DNA from: Hyaloraphidium curvatum SAG 235-1
Lineage: Eukaryota; Fungi; Monoblepharomycota
Assembly (NCBI GenBank): GCA_025558095.1
Contig: JAIVFI010000045.1
Span: 124,001 to 188,000 of the forward strand
Length of the DNA: 64,000 nucleotides
Reading direction: 5' to 3'
Under the pieces are notes generated by a model that worked only from the letters and a program-made list of their open reading frames with translations, ran no database searches and was not told the DNA's origin. The first letter of the stretch is position 1, and each line of letters begins with the position of its first letter. A program made the position numbers and the translations under genes. Positions 21,352 to 29,361 of the stretch are shown piece after piece.

Positions 21352-22841
21352 ATGACCTCAATAGGGTCTGCATCTGCACCTCAAGCCGCTGAGGCAAAAG
21401 CGGCGCCGCCGGCGATCCCAAAGGCGCTTTCTCGGACTGCCACCGTGCTTTCTTCTTCACGGATGCGCCTCACCGTGTTCCTCAGCCGACACGGCGAATC
21501 GGAGTTCAATCTCACTGGCCGCGTTGGCGGCGATTCGGACTTGAGCGCCATGGGCCACGTTTACGCCCGGAAGCTCCCGGAAACAATGGCCAAGGTGGGC
21601 TGCCTCCCACGTCCGAGCTTCGCGTCGAAACCGCTAACCTCCCTCGTCCGGCTCAGATTCTGCCTGAATCGGTGGAAACGTTGCACATTTGGACGTCAAC
21701 GTTGCGGAGGACACATTCCACGGCGGCTCATTTTCCGGAGAACTATCCCCGGAAGAGCTGGTCCGAGCTCGACGAAATCTACGCCGGGGATTGCGACGAG
21801 TACACCTACGAGGAGATTGAAGAAAAGTGGCCCGAGGTCATGGAGGACAGGGAGCGCGACAAGTTCAACTTTCGGTGGGTCGTTCTATCTGGGAATCTCG
21901 GTCTCGCTGACGACAGTCGGCCCACAGGTATCCGAACGGGGAGTCTTACTCGGATATCACGGATCGGCTGCTCCCATTGCTCCACCATTTGCAAGATGTC
22001 CTCTCTTCACCTTCCTTCCTGTCGTCCGAGGATCGGTCTCCGCGGGAAGCGGTCCTCATTATCGGACATCAGGCCGTCCTGCGTTGTGTCCTCGCCATGC
22101 TGAAGAAGAACGTGGCAGACGACGAGGTTCCTTACGTCAAGGTTCCGTTACACACGCTGATGAGGGTGGAGTGGGGAGGAGACAAGCCCGCCCTGGAAAA
22201 GCGATGGTGTGTTCATCGATCGTTCCATGTTGGCAGGCGCTCATGTCTTCCTCATGTTCTGAAGGCGCATGGACATTCCCGGAGCCGATACCCATCGGGA
22301 AGCGCAGGCAAAACGGACTAATGCTCCGCCGGAACCCGAAGTTCCCTACTCGCCGATCTATTTGTCGAGCTTGAAGCCCGACATCGAGCTTCCACTAGCT
22401 CCTGCAAAGGCCGACTCGGCTCAGAACACACAACCGGCCGCCGTCGAGGACTCTTCGACAAGGAACGGAGGCAAAGCAGGGCCGGACGAAAGCGCGGCCA
22501 CTTCAGCAGGGCCATTGCCCATTGTTGGACACGCTGCTGTCGGGGCCTCGGTTTCGCACGCGGCTCCAACACCCATCAACACCAAGCCTCCCATATTTGC
22601 GCTTGCGTTGACCCCTCCGCCGGGCCCTTCGGCATTGGGCGGTGGGGATCAGGCGGACCTTGTTCCAACCTTGATCCGCGTGCCGTCTGTTGTCGACGTT
22701 GCGTTGGTGGCCGAGAATCTGGACTCTAAAGTCGACGACAACAACAACCCGTCGCTGCAGCTTCCCAAGGGGTTGCCAACTGGGCCCTTTGCGGATCGAA
22801 TGAACAGGGGGAAGAGCTTTTCGTACGGAGATTCCCATTGA
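21352..22841 (+). CDS. Fructose-2,6-bisphosphatase-type histidine phosphatase without a kinase domain, 4 exons
   Basis: LSRHGESEFN, GGDSDLS, WTSTLRRT, LDEIYAG, RYPNGESY, IIGHQAVLRC, PYVKVPLHTL. Introns 21595-21656, 21875-21927 and one near 22208-22264. Start is 21352 or 21463. Confidence 0.85.
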
Positions 22842-22894: not shown

Positions 22895-25800
22895 TCACGC
22901 CGAGCCAGAAGGACGAGGTTGTCCGAGAAGCTTCGCCAGCGCGCTCGACACTGGCGCAGTCTTGAGCCTTTCCCTTTCGACCATGCTCTCGAAAGAATCC
23001 TCTCGTTCCTCCTCCTCGTACTGCCGCAAGTAGTCCCGCCCTTCGTTCAGGAACCTCCCCACTTCGTTGAAGAATCCGACCGCCCTCTCCCGGTCCCCCT
23101 GGTTTCCGTCCCTCGCTTTGTGCAGCTCCCGCGATATCATGCCCTTCCAGGTGTTGAGGTCGTTCCAGCTCGCGGTCTGCTTGGCCTCCAAAGCCTCGTG
23201 CTCCTGCGTCAAGCGCGCCACATCTTTTCTGAGCTGATCATTCTCGCGCTCCAGCTGGTTCAGTCTCCTTAAGATGCCCGACAGGCCATCTTCGCGATCG
23301 GAATCAGTTGATCCGTCCACCGAGTCCATGATTGGCGTCACTTCATCGTCGAGGGAGGCAGCAGAAGGGGCGCTGGCCCGGACTCCATCCAGACGATCCT
23401 GCGACCCCAGAATGACGCGGTCGTCCTGAGTTTGGTGTTGTCCGTGCAGAAGCCGCGATGAGCCCGTCGATTCTTTCAGAGGTCGTTTCGCCGCGGCACT
23501 CTCCGCGCCCGATTCCTCCAGCTCGAGATCGTCAAGCTTCCGCTTACTGCGGCCCACCGGCTCCGATTTCCGACGACTGCCTTCTTTAGACGCCTGAATG
23601 GCGAAGTGCGTGAGCACCATGGCGAGGGAAGCCTATGAATGACTAACCGCGCCACTTTCGATCGGCAACACCTCCGACTTCCGTGCCTTGGCCATCGCAC
23701 CACGTTCCCGCGCCAATGCGTTGCAAAGCTTGCAACCTCTGTTCACAAAAAGATTGACTGTATCCACGAATCGATGCGTTGGCTCCCCTCGGCACTCAAA
23801 AACAACGCGGCGACTGGATCCTTTGGTTATGCGCGTGGGATCCTGGAAAAGCTGCCCCTTGTTCTCCACCCTGCACTGCACTGCCAGAGGATCATCCGGT
23901 TGAAGATCACGCACCACCATCGCCGCGATGTGGGGGTGAGTGTCCGCAAGCGTTTCTTTGACCGCAGCCGCCTTGCAGTCCCTGCAGCCATAGTGCACGA
24001 AATAGTTCACCGTATCCGCGACTCGGTGCGTTGGCTCTCCCCGGCATTCGAAAACGACGTGGCGACGGGATACTGGAGATAGGAGCGTGGGATCCTGCAA
24101 AAGCTGGCCGCTGTTTTCTTCCCTGCACTTAACCGCCAACGGATCGTCCGGTTGAAGATCGCGCACCACCATCGCCGCGATGTCGGGGTAGGCGTCCGCA
24201 AGCGTTTCCTTAACCGGTGGTCCCTTGCACTCCCTGCAGCCATTGCGCACGAAAACGCCGACCGTCTCCACTTGTCGGTGCGATTGCTCCCCCCGGCACT
24301 CGAAAACGACGCGGCGACTGGATCCTTTGGATAGCAGCGCGGGATCCTGGAAAAGCCGGCCCTTGTTCTCCTCCCTGCACTGCACCGCCAACGGATCATC
24401 CGGTTGAAGATCCCGCACCACCATCGCCGCGATGTCGGGGTGAGTGTCCGCGAGTGATTTACCGGCTGCTGCCTTGCAGTCCCTGCAGCCATTCCGCAAG
24501 AAAATTTGGACCATGTCCACGAATCGGTGCGATGGCTCCCCCCGGCACTCGAAAACGACGCGGCGACTGGATCCTTTGGATAGCAGCGCGGGATCCTGGA
24601 AAAGCCGGCCCTTGTTCTCCTCCCTGCACTGCACCGCCAACGGATCATCCGGTTGAAGATCCCGCACCACCATCGCCGCGATGTCGGGGTGAGTGTCCGC
24701 GAGTGATTTACCGGCTGCTGCCTTGCAGTCCCTGCAGCCATTCCGCAAGAAAATTTGGACCATGTCCACGAATCGGTGCGATGGCTCCCCCCGGCACTCG
24801 AAAACAACGCGGCGACTGGATCCTTTGGATAGCAGCGCGGGATCCTGGAAAAGCCGGCCCTTGTTCTCCTCCCTGCACTGCACCGCCAACGGATCATCCG
24901 GTTGAAGATCCCGCACCACCATCGCCGCGATGTCGGGGTGGGTGTCCGCAAGCGTTTCTTTGACCACAGCCGCCTTGCATTCCCTGCAGCCAACGCGCAA
25001 GAAAACGTGAACTGCCTCCGCAAATCGGTGAGCTGGCTCCTCCGGGCACTCGAAAACGACGTAGCGACTGGATCCTTTGGATATGAGCGTGGGATCCTGA
25101 AAAAGCTGGCCATTGTTTTCCTCCCTGCATTTGGCCGCCAACGGATCATCCGGCTGAAGATCGCGCACCACCATGGCCGCGATGTCGGGGTGAGTTTCCG
25201 CAAGCGATTGCTTGAACCACTTCCTCGCCGGTTCGGGAGACTGCTCGTCGCCATCAGAGCCGTTCGCAACGCTCTGCCGATCATCACTTCCCGCCTGCAA
25301 TCCGTGCCCAGGCAGATGCAGCTGATCACCAGCGGCATCCTCCGGTTCCGAATGAATGTCATCCTCCGCGCTGGCGGCATCCGTCTTCTCCCAACACAAC
25401 GGGCACGAGGGAGGGTTCTTCCTTAGAGCAAAGCTCTTGATGACGGCACTCCAAAGATGGGAAGGATCGTCCGGGCATCGCAAGACGACCATCTTGTTGG
25501 AAAACTTTCTCAGCTCAGCCGGATTCTGCCACAGCTTGCCACCGTTGATGGGATGCCCTTTGCACTTCAGGGCTACCTCCGAGTTCTCGTCCACGTCCTG
25601 AGCTACCATGCTGGCCAAATCAGGGCGCAAGGGCCTCGGTGCCTTCAAGAGGGGCGGCTTCTCGAGTTCGTCCGCATCGTCCTCCTCTGAACTAGCCCCT
25701 TCTGCATCCTCGGCAGAGGCCAATACCGGATCTTTCGGCGTCGATCGAGTCCCTCTTGCTTTGGTCAGCTTCTGCGTAGGCGCTTCATCGCTCTCAAGAG

Positions 25801-27563
25801 GAGGCTTCCGCGTCCGGCGGCGTTTCGGCTCGCTAGAGCTTTGTCCGTCGAGCTCGTTGCCGCGCCGCTTTGCCAACCGAGCAGAGGCATGGCGCTCAGG
25901 GCTCGCCAAGGAAGACCGGTGAGGGCTGCTGCCTCCAGCAACACCACTGACGTCGGATCCAAGGTCGTCCTTGACGAGGCGTGCGTTAGGGCGGTACGTC
26001 GAAACGGAACGCAAACAAACCTCCTCATCTGACGCGAACTTCAGCGAGCTTCCAGAGAAGCTCTCGGATCGCGGCTCCGGAGTCTCGACTTTTGCCAGTG
26101 TTGCAACGCGATCGATCGACTGAGAAGACGCGGAACTCGGGGAATCGGACACATTTGGCTCGCGAGGCGCACGAGTCCGGGTGTGGGGCCGCCGAAAGCT
26201 TTCTGGAGCCTCGAGGGGTGCTTCGATGTCCGCGGCATGTGCGGAATCCGCAGTCAGCAAAGGAATGTCCAGATTGGTCTGCCACCTCGTCCGTGGCCCG
26301 TCCCTGGTCGTTGGCGGAGACATCCTGCCATCCCGGACCTTGGGCGCGGTTGACACAGGCTCCAAAGTCTTCCTGCGAAGCCTCGCCGCATAGTCGCCAG
26401 CCTTTAGGCTTGCAACCGTCCCTTTGGCCGTTTGCACAGTCAAAGACTTGGTCCGTGCGCCCCTCCGCGCGGCGTTTGCGGCGATAGGCTGCTCAATGAT
26501 CTCCGATGTTGGAGAGGAAAGTCCACTTCGCCGTGGTTGCTCTTGCCGCTGCTGCTGAGGAACATGCATCAGAACAGGGTGATGGTGCTCTTCCTCGAGG
26601 ACTCACATAGAGTAATACGGGATCATCATCTTCACCTTCGCTCGAGTTCGAAACCAAATGCACGGGTCGTTCTCGGACACGCCCTTTCGGGCTCTCCGGC
26701 GGAAGGGAAGAGGCGCGTCCACGCGAGCGCAACGGCCTCGGGGTCCGAGCAGAAACAGAATCGGAACTCGACGAGCGGTTCCTCCTTCTGAACTTGCCGG
26801 CAACAACACCGCCGTCTTGTGATGCCGAGGGCGAAGGCACTTCAGTGCCGATTCCCATTGCGAACAAGCTTTCTTTGATGGCTCGGTCCCTCCTGTTCAG
26901 AACCATCCTCTCGAACGCTCCGTTTGCATGGTAGCTCAGCAGCTTGCGCTGCTCGACGCTCTCTGCTGTCAAGGGAACCACCGTATCCTCCGGCTGCACC
27001 CATCCGACGCGTCCCCCGTCGTTGACGTACCTGGGAAGCCAGTGAGGTCACTTTCCAATCTGCTTTCGCAGCAACGACAGAGAACTGACTGCACCGGCAG
27101 CGCATCAACGCCCTCATCGTCCTGAGTTTTTCGAAAGTAATCCCTATTCTGCTTCTTGAGATTCGCCATGTCGCTAAGGTCGACGACCATCGCTGGCCAG
27201 GGCGGGAACTTGTCGTCGGTTTCGCCCTTCGACACGCGAAAGGGAAAGGTAGCATGGTGAGATAGAGACAAGCAAGCAACTTTGAGAACGGAGACGCGTC
27301 CCCGGGTCCGCCGAAACGCGTCCTCCAGATCCTGGACGAACTCGGGGCGACAGTCCCTCCATCCCCCCTCCCCCATGTTGGCATCGAATCCCGAAAATGC
27401 CGCGCCATGCTCTCCCATGGCATAATTCAGACATCGCACTCACCTCGTCGTAATTGGGGACGACAAGCAGGTATGTGCCGGGGGGATACCGATTGACGTC
27501 CTTTTGCCCATTGCTGCTGGTGCCCCTTCCCCGGGTCTGGCGCCTCCCGGGGCTTGCCGACAT
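22895..27563 (-). CDS. PWWP domain + 7 treble-clef zinc-ribbon repeats (DUF4379-like) + C-terminal coiled coil; ~1428 aa, 5 exons
   Basis: Exons 27563-27444, 27226-27090, 27030-26607, 26554-23648 and 23593-22895 give one open frame of 4287 nt. PWWP: YPPGTYLLV...FPPWPAMVV...PVQYVNDGGRVGWVQPEDTVVPL. Repeat consensus SLAxTHPDIAA...DPxLxSKGSSRxVVFEC...H...GCxxC. Confidence 0.8.
23719..25213 (-). repeat. Coding tandem repeat: 6 units of 249-252 bp, plus one diverged unit at about 25395-25640
   Basis: Near-perfect 249-bp periodicity is visible from about 24290 to 24940, with identical translated units. Confidence 0.95.
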
Positions 27564-28110: not shown

Positions 28111-29361
28111 ATGCATCATCGTCGTCACCCGCTGGAGGACCTGTTTGCCTACGGCGGGCCGCCGTGGAGCGCGCTGAACCCTCGTGCGGGAGATGGCCCC
28201 TGGAACTCCGCGTCGCTCTTCAACGACCCCTTCTTCACGAACTACGGTCGCTTCGGCAGCGGCGCCAGTCCTTGGGGCGTCGCCGCGCCCGCGGAGCCTT
28301 CCAATCGCACGGACACAGGATCGGGACACGGACAGTCGGCCGGTTCCCGCACCCCTTCTCCTCAGGACTCATCGCGCTCCATGGGCCGGAACTCCCGTTA
28401 TGAAGTCGATGGTGCGCCGCCCTCGGAGACTGCTCCAGTTTCGTCGAGAGTGTCACGCGCACCGCAACGCACTGTTCGCTTGAGGCGATTCCCGTTCTAC
28501 TTCCCGACTCCCTACTGCGATCAATGTGACTCGGACGAGGACGATTATGGGATGGATTATCTTCCCTTTGGAGACCTGTTCTGGTCGGATTTCCCGCGGG
28601 GATGGTACGAGCCTCGCCAGCCCGCGACGCGGAAGGCTCCTGGCCACACCGATGCCGCGGCGGCCGTTGCTCCCAAACCACCACCAGCTTCATCGACACC
28701 TCCATTTGAAGAAGAGCCGAGGCCTGTGAGAAAGACCGCTCCTGAGCAAGCCGAGTTGCGCTCCCCGGCGTCGCCAGCCGCGCCTGCGAAGGACATGGAC
28801 TTTGAGACGTCGCTCAGCCACAAGGAAATGCTCTACTCCGCGTTGGACTCCATGGACATTAAGCATAAGGACGTTGGCGGAGCTGGCGATTGCCTTTTTT
28901 TGTCGCTGAGCGACCAGATCGCCAACTATCGCGCTCCCTTCGGAAACACGAAGCAGGCACGTTTTCCGAAGCTCAGTGCCAACCAGATCCGCGGCATCGT
29001 GGTCGACGAGATCGCAACGTCGAGAGATCTGTACAAGTGGGACGTGCTTGCCCTCGTAAACGGCAATGCACGATCGGAAGACGAGGCATTCGACGCCTAC
29101 GTTGCAAAAATGGCGCGCCCGGGCGAGTACGGCGACGCAATCTGCCTCGCTGCTTTCGCCAGGGTCTTTGACTGCGGCGTCGTTGTCTGGATGTGGGACG
29201 ACAAGAAGGACCGTTTGAGCCGCGTGATCGTAGAGTGGGAGGAAGACGGGGACGGACCGCGGGTGGAGAAGCGGAGGCTGCACGTGGGCTGGTTTCCTGC
29301 GGGAGAAGGCGAAAGCGGAAATCACTACTTTTCGGTGTTTCCTGGCGATGTGGAGCTGTAG
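28111..29361 (+). CDS. OTU-domain cysteine protease (deubiquitinase-like), intronless
   Basis: VGGAGDCLFLSLSDQ, YVAKMARPGEYGDAICLAAFA, GNHYFSV. Confidence 0.8.
   Translation: MHHRRHPLEDLFAYGGPPWSALNPRAGDGPWNSASLFNDPFFTNYGRFGSGASPWGVAAPAEPSNRTDTGSGHGQSAGSRTPSPQDSSRSMGRNSRYEVDGAPPSETAPVSSRVSRAPQRTVRLRRFPFYFPTPYCDQCDSDEDDYGMDYLPFGDLFWSDFPRGWYEPRQPATRKAPGHTDAAAAVAPKPPPASSTPPFEEEPRPVRKTAPEQAELRSPASPAAPAKDMDFETSLSHKEMLYSALDSMDIKHKDVGGAGDCLFLSLSDQIANYRAPFGNTKQARFPKLSANQIRGIVVDEIATSRDLYKWDVLALVNGNARSEDEAFDAYVAKMARPGEYGDAICLAAFARVFDCGVVVWMWDDKKDRLSRVIVEWEEDGDGPRVEKRRLHVGWFPAGEGESGNHYFSVFPGDVEL

Follow-up and report, generated by a model that had tools for sequence, protein, structure and literature searches.

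The window analyzed here is a 64,000-nt stretch of the genome of the early-diverging monoblepharid fungus Hyaloraphidium curvatum SAG 235-1 (assembly GCA_025558095.1, contig JAIVFI010000045.1, positions 124,001 to 188,000 of the forward strand), and its subject is a gene on the minus strand at 22895-27563. Read independently from the sequence, this gene has five exons with a coding length of 4287 nt, that is, 1428 codons plus a stop codon, and the spliced reading frame is open across all of them. The product would carry a probable PWWP domain at its N-terminus, followed by a disordered basic linker, seven zinc modules of the DUF4379 family, and a coil with a conserved tail. The features are as follows.

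27444..27563, minus strand: exon 1, 40 aa, with the start codon and, from a reading of the sequence, what is presumed to be strand 1 of the PWWP domain (G-T-Y-L-L-V-V-P)
27227..27443, minus strand: intron 1, 217 nt, GTGAGT...CTCAC...AAG, modeled acceptor at 27228-27227
27090..27226, minus strand: exon 2, putative core of the PWWP domain, containing F-P-P-W-P-A and an insertion loop (PF00855, 18.4 bits)
27031..27089, minus strand: intron 2, 59 nt, phase 2, GTCAGT...CTCAC...CAG, position and phase as in the orthologue described below
26607..27030, minus strand: exon 3, putative second half of the PWWP domain (Y-V-N-D-G-G-R-V-G-W-V...P-L-T), helices, and the start of a Ser/Arg-rich linker
26555..26606, minus strand: intron 3, 52 nt, phase 0, GTGAGT...CTGAT...CAG, joining the PWWP exons to the long open exon 4
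23648..26554, minus strand: exon 4, 969 codons without a stop, with the disordered basic linker and the seven zinc modules
25379..25657, minus strand: unit 0, a diverged stand-alone DUF4379-type module
23708..25213, minus strand: six-unit array, 83 or 84 aa per unit, 252-bp period
24992-25024, 24740-24772, 24491-24523, 24242-24274, 23990-24022, and 23738-23770, minus strand: variable strand-helix segments of the array units
23594..23647, minus strand: intron 4, 54 nt, phase 0, GTTAGT...CTCAC...CAG, junction present in GenBank KAI9000393.1
22895..23593, minus strand: exon 5, 232 aa plus stop (coding 23593-22898), with an acidic/Ser-rich stretch, the coil, and a conserved helical tail

All four introns (217, 59, 52, and 54 nt) are of the GT-AG type, and in each of introns 2-4 a branch-like CTCAC or CTGAT motif lies 11-16 nt ahead of the CAG. 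An earlier note, made from this sequence alone, had joined the exons by four introns into one protein of ~1428 aa; this model was reproduced independently, with intron 4 borne out by KAI9000393.1 and introns 1 and 2 by the orthologue. The same note's long disordered linker with a motif resembling a nuclear localization signal, PKRRRTRK, was located in exon 4 (25805-25828). All sequence, profile, and structure searches reported below were run on single exons. The acceptor of intron 1 may be the AG at 27210-27209 instead of that at 27228-27227, because exon 2 of the orthologue begins with FPPWPA; a tblastn search with that exon, which follows a 234-nt intron 1, lands at 27208. The alternative acceptor gives a 235-nt intron and an exon 2 that starts at 27208. 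Both versions are in frame, and the resulting proteins of 1428 and 1422 aa differ by 6 aa. A third in-frame acceptor, at 27332, which makes intron 1 112 nt long, was disfavored, as was a start without an intron: adding the in-frame residues upstream of exon 2 left the match to the PWWP profile unextended.

An unannotated orthologue lies at 8314-11767 of L009, a contig of the Logan assembly SRR26194948 that was reached through P0033, a weak match with the same unit subtype. Its open model has 975 codons, five GT-AG introns, and two zinc units, and the gene caller had split it into seven open reading frames (ORFs). Along one strand it presents an exon ending in LVVP...E with a GTGAGT donor, both shared with exon 1 of the window gene, then an FPPWPA exon, a Y-Y-N-D...RVGW...PLT exon, the linker, the two units, and a coil/tail exon. 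Introns 1 and 2 have identical positions and phases in the two genes, and a phase-0 intron of 68 nt between the PWWP exons and the linker is the equivalent of window intron 3. Exon 2 is 54% identical to its counterpart, the RVGW and PLT motifs of exon 3 are invariant, unit 0 corresponds to the first unit of the orthologue, and exon 5 matches the last exon of L009 with 33% identity over 118 aa (E 1e-14). The surroundings are shared as well. The window gene is flanked by a His_Phos_1 (fructose-2,6-bisphosphatase-like) gene at 21436-22838 and an OTU-domain gene at 28111-29361. The former is convergent at both loci and 72-78% identical; the latter, 45% identical, is near both loci, and in L009 it lies ~6.4 kb upstream on the same strand and is not divergent.

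Because L009 carries the colinear parts with matching introns 1 and 2, the fusion of PWWP part and array is conserved, and the PWWP part, the array, and the coil very probably form a single nuclear gene. Alternatively, the locus could hold a small PWWP protein made from exons 1-3 and read through to a stop at 26493, and a separate array protein starting from the ATG at 26569. Such a start codon does stand in frame just upstream of exon 4, and the public annotation leaves the two parts unjoined. Without intron 3, however, the two same-strand ORFs would overlap by 77 nt, and a canonical, phase-preserving 52-nt intron sits exactly at the boundary. In L009 the parts are colinear in the same way, with a phase-0 intron that corresponds to it, and the public model begins at an internal Met past near-identical units, which would fit a truncated model. 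We consider the two-gene arrangement very improbable.

The public record of this gene consists of its tail. An exhaustive protein search returned one identical protein, P0002, which is GenBank KAI9000393.1, a 407-aa hypothetical protein of H. curvatum. It is a C-terminal fragment whose sequence runs from exon 4 into exon 5 across the very junction of our gene model, and intron 4 is thus independently supported. Its start is the first internal Met of exon 4 past the near-identical units 2-4 (window 23648-24172), which would fit a model truncated at a masked repeat. Word searches with the whole of exon 4 and with the exon-3 ORF found no annotated counterpart, and a search with exon 4 residues 300-960 gave one weak bacterial-type match and no annotated counterpart, models of 295-532 aa lying outside the length windows of these searches. 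With the same limit on length, no annotated protein was found over the linker or the PWWP part. To call the gene hidden, as had been done, was fair. Other repeat-containing genes in the H. curvatum annotation may be clipped in the same way.

The N-terminus is probably a PWWP domain split over three exons. Its motif pattern, FPPWPA followed by Y-x-N-D..RVGW...PLT, is present and invariant between the two orthologues. Exon 2 matches PF00855 with 18.4 bits (E 0.003, profile positions 10-32; cut-off 25.6), and L009 exon 2 matches the same profile segment with 15.2 bits, also below threshold. Exons 1 and 3 alone gave no PF00855 match, exon 1 alone no match to any Pfam family, and exon 3 alone no match in Pfam or among PDB sequences. 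For exon 3, the three named Atlas clusters that lie closest are all PWWP, at ~0.8, a value that serves as a lead only. Neither the two exons 2 and 3 nor their two-species profiles found anything significant among PDB sequences, the PWWP domain of DNMT3B appearing at E 2.4. A six-frame PF00855 search of the H. curvatum genome yielded no candidates and likewise failed to recover its controls, and it was therefore uninformative. The domain assignment of the earlier note is probable, with the hallmark motifs and the partial matches of both orthologues behind it; in the exon-wise hidden Markov model check the matches stayed below the Pfam cut-off. Compared with PWWP readers such as DNMT3A/B, PSIP1/LEDGF, and the fungal Pdp/Ioc4-type proteins, the putative domain shares, as read from the sequence, the P-x-W-P strand, the strand order, and aromatic residues that could form the cage (F and W from exon 2 and Y from exon 3, all conserved in the orthologue). 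It differs in its PPWP motif, in the absence of the partner domains of known PWWP families, and in an identity that is sub-threshold exon by exon.

The assignment of the repeated part is firm. Exon 4 matches PF14311 (DUF4379) in four stretches with 82.8 bits (E 2e-23; cut-off 24.5), and the zinc ligands C-x5-H-x13-17-C-x2-C occur in all seven units; over 120 aligned DUF4379 units these ligand columns are invariant or nearly so. The AlphaFold2 (AF2) model of one unit, with a predicted local distance difference test score (pLDDT) of 90, is a treble clef. It superimposes on the DUF4379 protein mt-SAF33 with Z 8.6 and a root-mean-square deviation of 2.2 over 71 residues (profile E 6e-14). Only four PDB representatives reach Z >= 2 to the unit model, all of them DUF4379 proteins. 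Foldseek, run with the unit model on the PDB, found nothing at E <= 0.001, and its best matches were kinetoplastid DUF4379 chains. The seven C-H-CxxC ribbon units of DUF4379 type that had been read from the sequence are thereby confirmed. A three-unit AF2 model combines a pLDDT of 92 with a predicted template modeling score (pTM) of 0.50, and the modules are therefore well folded and sit on short, flexible joints. The units belong to a divergent, lineage-specific 83-aa DUF4379 subtype in which a 15-residue insert makes an extra helix, and this subtype is common to a paralog on contig C15 of the same genome and to a few uncultured relatives. The canonical signature W...WW...W.A.V..R is absent from the units, which have V, VF, F, and F at the Trp/Arg columns.

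The array is a product of recent and continuing unit turnover. Tandem Repeats Finder (TRF) reports a 252-bp period with 5.8 copies and 86% matches at 23748-25206. The earlier term "minisatellite-encoded" holds insofar as this is a coding tandem repeat, and does not hold insofar as the period is longer than that of a minisatellite in the usual sense. Nucleotide identities among the array units are 77-96%, with units 1, 5, and 6 at 77-83% to the others. Units 2 and 3 are 96% identical in DNA and identical in protein, and unit 4 is chimeric, its first 170 nt being identical to unit 3 before the sequences diverge. Conversion or unequal exchange is ongoing, and its tracts are visible among units 2-4. 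The proportion of synonymous differences (pS) among units is 0.3-0.5, so that the amplification is old enough for synonymous change. Seven units in H. curvatum stand against two in L009, which has one unit at the array's place, and the six-unit array is therefore a lineage-specific amplification.

Variation between the units is concentrated just before the G-C-x-x-C, as had been claimed (11-column window, permutation p = 0.002), and the variable 10-residue strings listed earlier are correct by our unit table. In the unit model, the 11 variable residues form a strand and a short helix, and judging from helical periodicity these residues would be solvent-facing. The ratio of nonsynonymous to synonymous proportions (pN/pS) is 0.43 overall and 0.75-0.9 in this segment. 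By minimal-change counts, the segment has 18 nonsynonymous and 8 synonymous changes vs 38 and 31 elsewhere, no significant excess (Fisher p = 0.25). The variable columns are those that vary family-wide (Spearman 0.57 over 106 canonical units), and the contrast between unit fronts and backs is inflated because the fronts of units 2-4 were recently homogenized. The strongest signal points in the opposite direction. The inserted helix has a pN/pS of 0.08 at a pS of about 0.5, and it is therefore under tight purifying selection in every unit.

Among 1.84 billion representative proteins, 163 relatives were found, of which 150 were listed and 149 scanned against Pfam. DUF4379 was present in 146 of the 149. 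Matches to MTES_1575 numbered 18 + 9 and to DUF559 16 + 9, tallies that may share proteins; a few relatives carried HNH, T5orf172/MUG113, helicase/SNF2, or TAL repeat matches, and 15 carried DnaJ. PWWP occurred in none of these 149 nearest relatives, in agreement with the statement that no protein of this architecture is known. No nuclease family matched any exon of the window gene at E <= 1 in Pfam. One published reading takes CapR/DUF4379-like repeats to be the part of Vsr-type homing endonucleases that binds DNA (PMC12350094). In a nuclease-less relative, CapR, DNA binding is cysteine-dependent and a promoter is repressed (PMC8096241). Three DUF4379-array relatives (within P0082-P0151, alignment A3) also match the TAL effector repeat family, with a best E of 1e-10; these matches would mean two modular repeat types in one protein.

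DUF4379-type ribbons had been described as known mainly from bacteria, large DNA viruses, and some protists and not from fungi; for fungi this proved incorrect. A survey of early-diverging fungi reports, in one subtree, 219 horizontally acquired Mucoromycota homologs, the target proteins having DUF4379 as their only domain (PMC11291939), and the H. curvatum genome itself has at least two further DUF4379 genes: on C15 a fusion with SP-RING, and on C23 an ORF of 352 aa. At the former (G000:C15, L007, 5129-9903, minus strand), two ORFs overlap by ~115 nt: one of 721 aa encodes an SP-RING/MIZ finger (E 5.5e-12), and the other, of 907 aa, bears two DUF4379 units of the 83-aa type. The protein P0009 (1612 aa, intronless, L010 of Logan assembly SRR23967301) has zf-MIZ, a weak PINIT match, and two units in the same order as on C15, and the two C15 ORFs are probably one gene.

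These results, taken with the company that DUF4379 keeps elsewhere, lead us to lean toward a nuclease-less, multivalent nucleic-acid-binding array domesticated onto a chromatin reader. The zinc modules would descend from arrays that accompany Vsr-like, HNH, and GIY-YIG-type endonucleases of bacteria and phages. In those enzymes the arrays are thought to give target recognition; the nuclease is absent from the H. curvatum protein. In H. curvatum the second module gave rise to six tandem copies by unequal crossing-over, and gene conversion is still homogenizing units 2-4. The resulting array probably binds nucleic acid as a multivalent platform, with DNA the most likely ligand, as its domain neighbors and CapR suggest. 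The PWWP domain would anchor the array to nucleosomes, and two chains may pair through the coil. The inserted helix would be the invariant face of each module, and the variable strand-helix before the CxxC may tune each module's ligand.

Several points weigh against this. The Arg that is most conserved in the family, found in 91 of 106 canonical units, is Phe in the window units and two conserved Trp are Val, and for this reason ligand preference may have changed. The PWWP domain never reaches the Pfam cut-off, because it was scored exon by exon only, and the support for introns 1-3 consists of sequence and conservation. No DUF4379 domain is known in complex with DNA; the only solved ones lie in kinetoplastid mitoribosome assembly particles. 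A homodimer prediction for the coil (score 0.18, mark 0.32) gave no evidence either way. Some of this speaks for the main rival explanation, in which the modules bind RNA or proteins and the protein is a chromatin-tethered scaffold with repeated docking sites, the invariant insert helix being the epitope. The solved domains are those of mt-SAF33 and mS66, and mt-SAF33 is among the factors on the immature h22/h23 region of 9S rRNA (PMC8784144). The loss of the family Arg in all window units would agree with such a scaffold, as would the strongest constraint, which falls on a lineage-specific helix that is the same in six units, the coupling of the same unit type to a SUMO ligase in the paralog, and the DnaJ domain in 15 relatives. 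However, DUF4379 arrays are paired predominantly with DNA nucleases, TAL repeats occur in three relatives, and the related CapR domain binds DNA experimentally. We regard the scaffold as unlikely.

The earlier note had seen PRDM9-like logic in the array. On that view each unit would read a few bases through the variable helix, the array would evolve quickly under diversifying selection, and the PWWP domain would link it to a histone mark, serving recombination targeting or transposon surveillance. Like PRDM9 and other tandem zinc-finger arrays, the gene has a coding repeat of zinc modules, recent unit turnover with a very recent duplication and a chimeric unit, and a chromatin-related domain. 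Its variation clusters before the CxxC, its unit number differs between the two species (7 vs 2), and five hand-picked helix positions have a pN/pS of about 1.4-1.5. These five were picked after the data were seen, however, whereas the segment as a whole lacks a significant nonsynonymous excess, its variable columns are simply the family-wide variable ones, and the homogenized fronts of units 2-4 inflate the contrast. PRDM9 also pairs a 28-aa C2H2 finger with a methyltransferase, whereas the H. curvatum protein pairs an 83-aa treble clef with a reader and is without a catalytic histone domain. The proposed residue code is thus unsupported, and we consider diversifying recognition of this kind quite improbable. 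A related speculation, to which we also give a low probability, is that the DUF4379 module is a programmable DNA reader whose specificity comes from the exposed short-helix residues. The seven-unit array on a PWWP domain would then be a eukaryotic, nuclease-free targeting factor for sequence plus chromatin state, its target shifting by unit turnover; the logic would resemble that of PRDM9 or TALE arrays on a different fold.

Returning to the domesticated nucleic-acid-binding array, its closest counterparts are the bacterial and phage DUF4379/CapR-like arrays of Vsr-type (DUF559, MTES_1575), HNH, and GIY-YIG/T5orf172 endonucleases. They have the same PF14311 C-H-C-C treble clef in tandem arrays of 2-11 units, with variable positions in the same pre-CxxC strand-helix. 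The H. curvatum protein differs from them in lacking a nuclease, in its 83-aa units with the 15-residue inserted helix and the change of Arg to Phe, and in being encoded by a eukaryotic intron-bearing gene fused to PWWP and coil. CapR of the Vibrio cholerae phage satellite PLE (PMC8096241) is a precedent for a nuclease-less module derived from a homing endonuclease and reused as a DNA-binding regulator, and the CapR Pfam model also matches some DUF4379 arrays among the relatives. In contrast to the window gene product, CapR has neither an array nor a chromatin reader; it is one small bacterial-satellite protein whose ligands are four Cys, and the sequence kinship is distant. The Trypanosoma proteins mt-SAF33 and mS66 (PDB 6sga, 6hiv, 7ane), the best structural match, represent another eukaryotic co-option of DUF4379. 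They serve as assembly or structural proteins of the mitoribosome and are parts of an RNA-protein particle; they have one or two units, no PWWP domain, and no tandem amplification.

We conclude that the fusion is real, conserved, and publicly unannotated, and that it is built from known kinds of domains with a lineage-specific repeat amplification. The public annotation, in which a protein of 1422 or 1428 aa is represented by its last 407 residues only, is corrected by this analysis. An architecture of PWWP domain, DUF4379 array, and coil, absent from the 149 scanned relatives, is documented, and a coding array is caught amplifying, with two units in one species and seven in the other. Were it true that the modules bind DNA with a specificity of their own per unit, they would form a new modular recognition scaffold, and DUF4379 would receive its first functional assignment outside ribosome assembly. 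The SP-RING/MIZ SUMO-ligase paralog (G000:C15; P0009) has the same 83-aa subtype with the inserted helix, fused to a domain that usually acts on chromatin proteins. It differs from the window gene in having SP-RING instead of PWWP and two dispersed units instead of a tandem array. Together, the two genes show that, in this fungal lineage, proteins with chromatin-related domains have adopted a zinc module typical of bacterial and phage endonucleases.

The coiled coil predicted in the earlier note was recovered in exon 5 as a leucine-zipper-like coil at 23180-23284, with five heptads whose a positions are L/L/N/V/H and d positions I/L/L/L/L. In Pfam, exon 5 also weakly matches coiled-coil families, among them bZIP_2 in its zipper part. 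An Atlas look-up of the C-terminal tail returned unnamed clusters only.

Two further DUF4379 loci show other forms of the repeat. The ORF on C23 (G000:C23, L008, 4638-5696, plus strand; 352 aa) has two DUF4379 matches (E 5e-10) of a different repeat subtype (C..H...GC.GC), and the surrounding segments of ~115 aa are themselves repeated. On the metagenome scaffold L011 (1747 nt), the consecutive ORFs P0059 and P0077 each contain one unit of the 83-90-aa type followed by a shared P-S-G-Y-Y-G-A...S-T-E-P tail, and a third ORF runs off the end; this scaffold may hold another exon-per-unit array in an uncultured relative.

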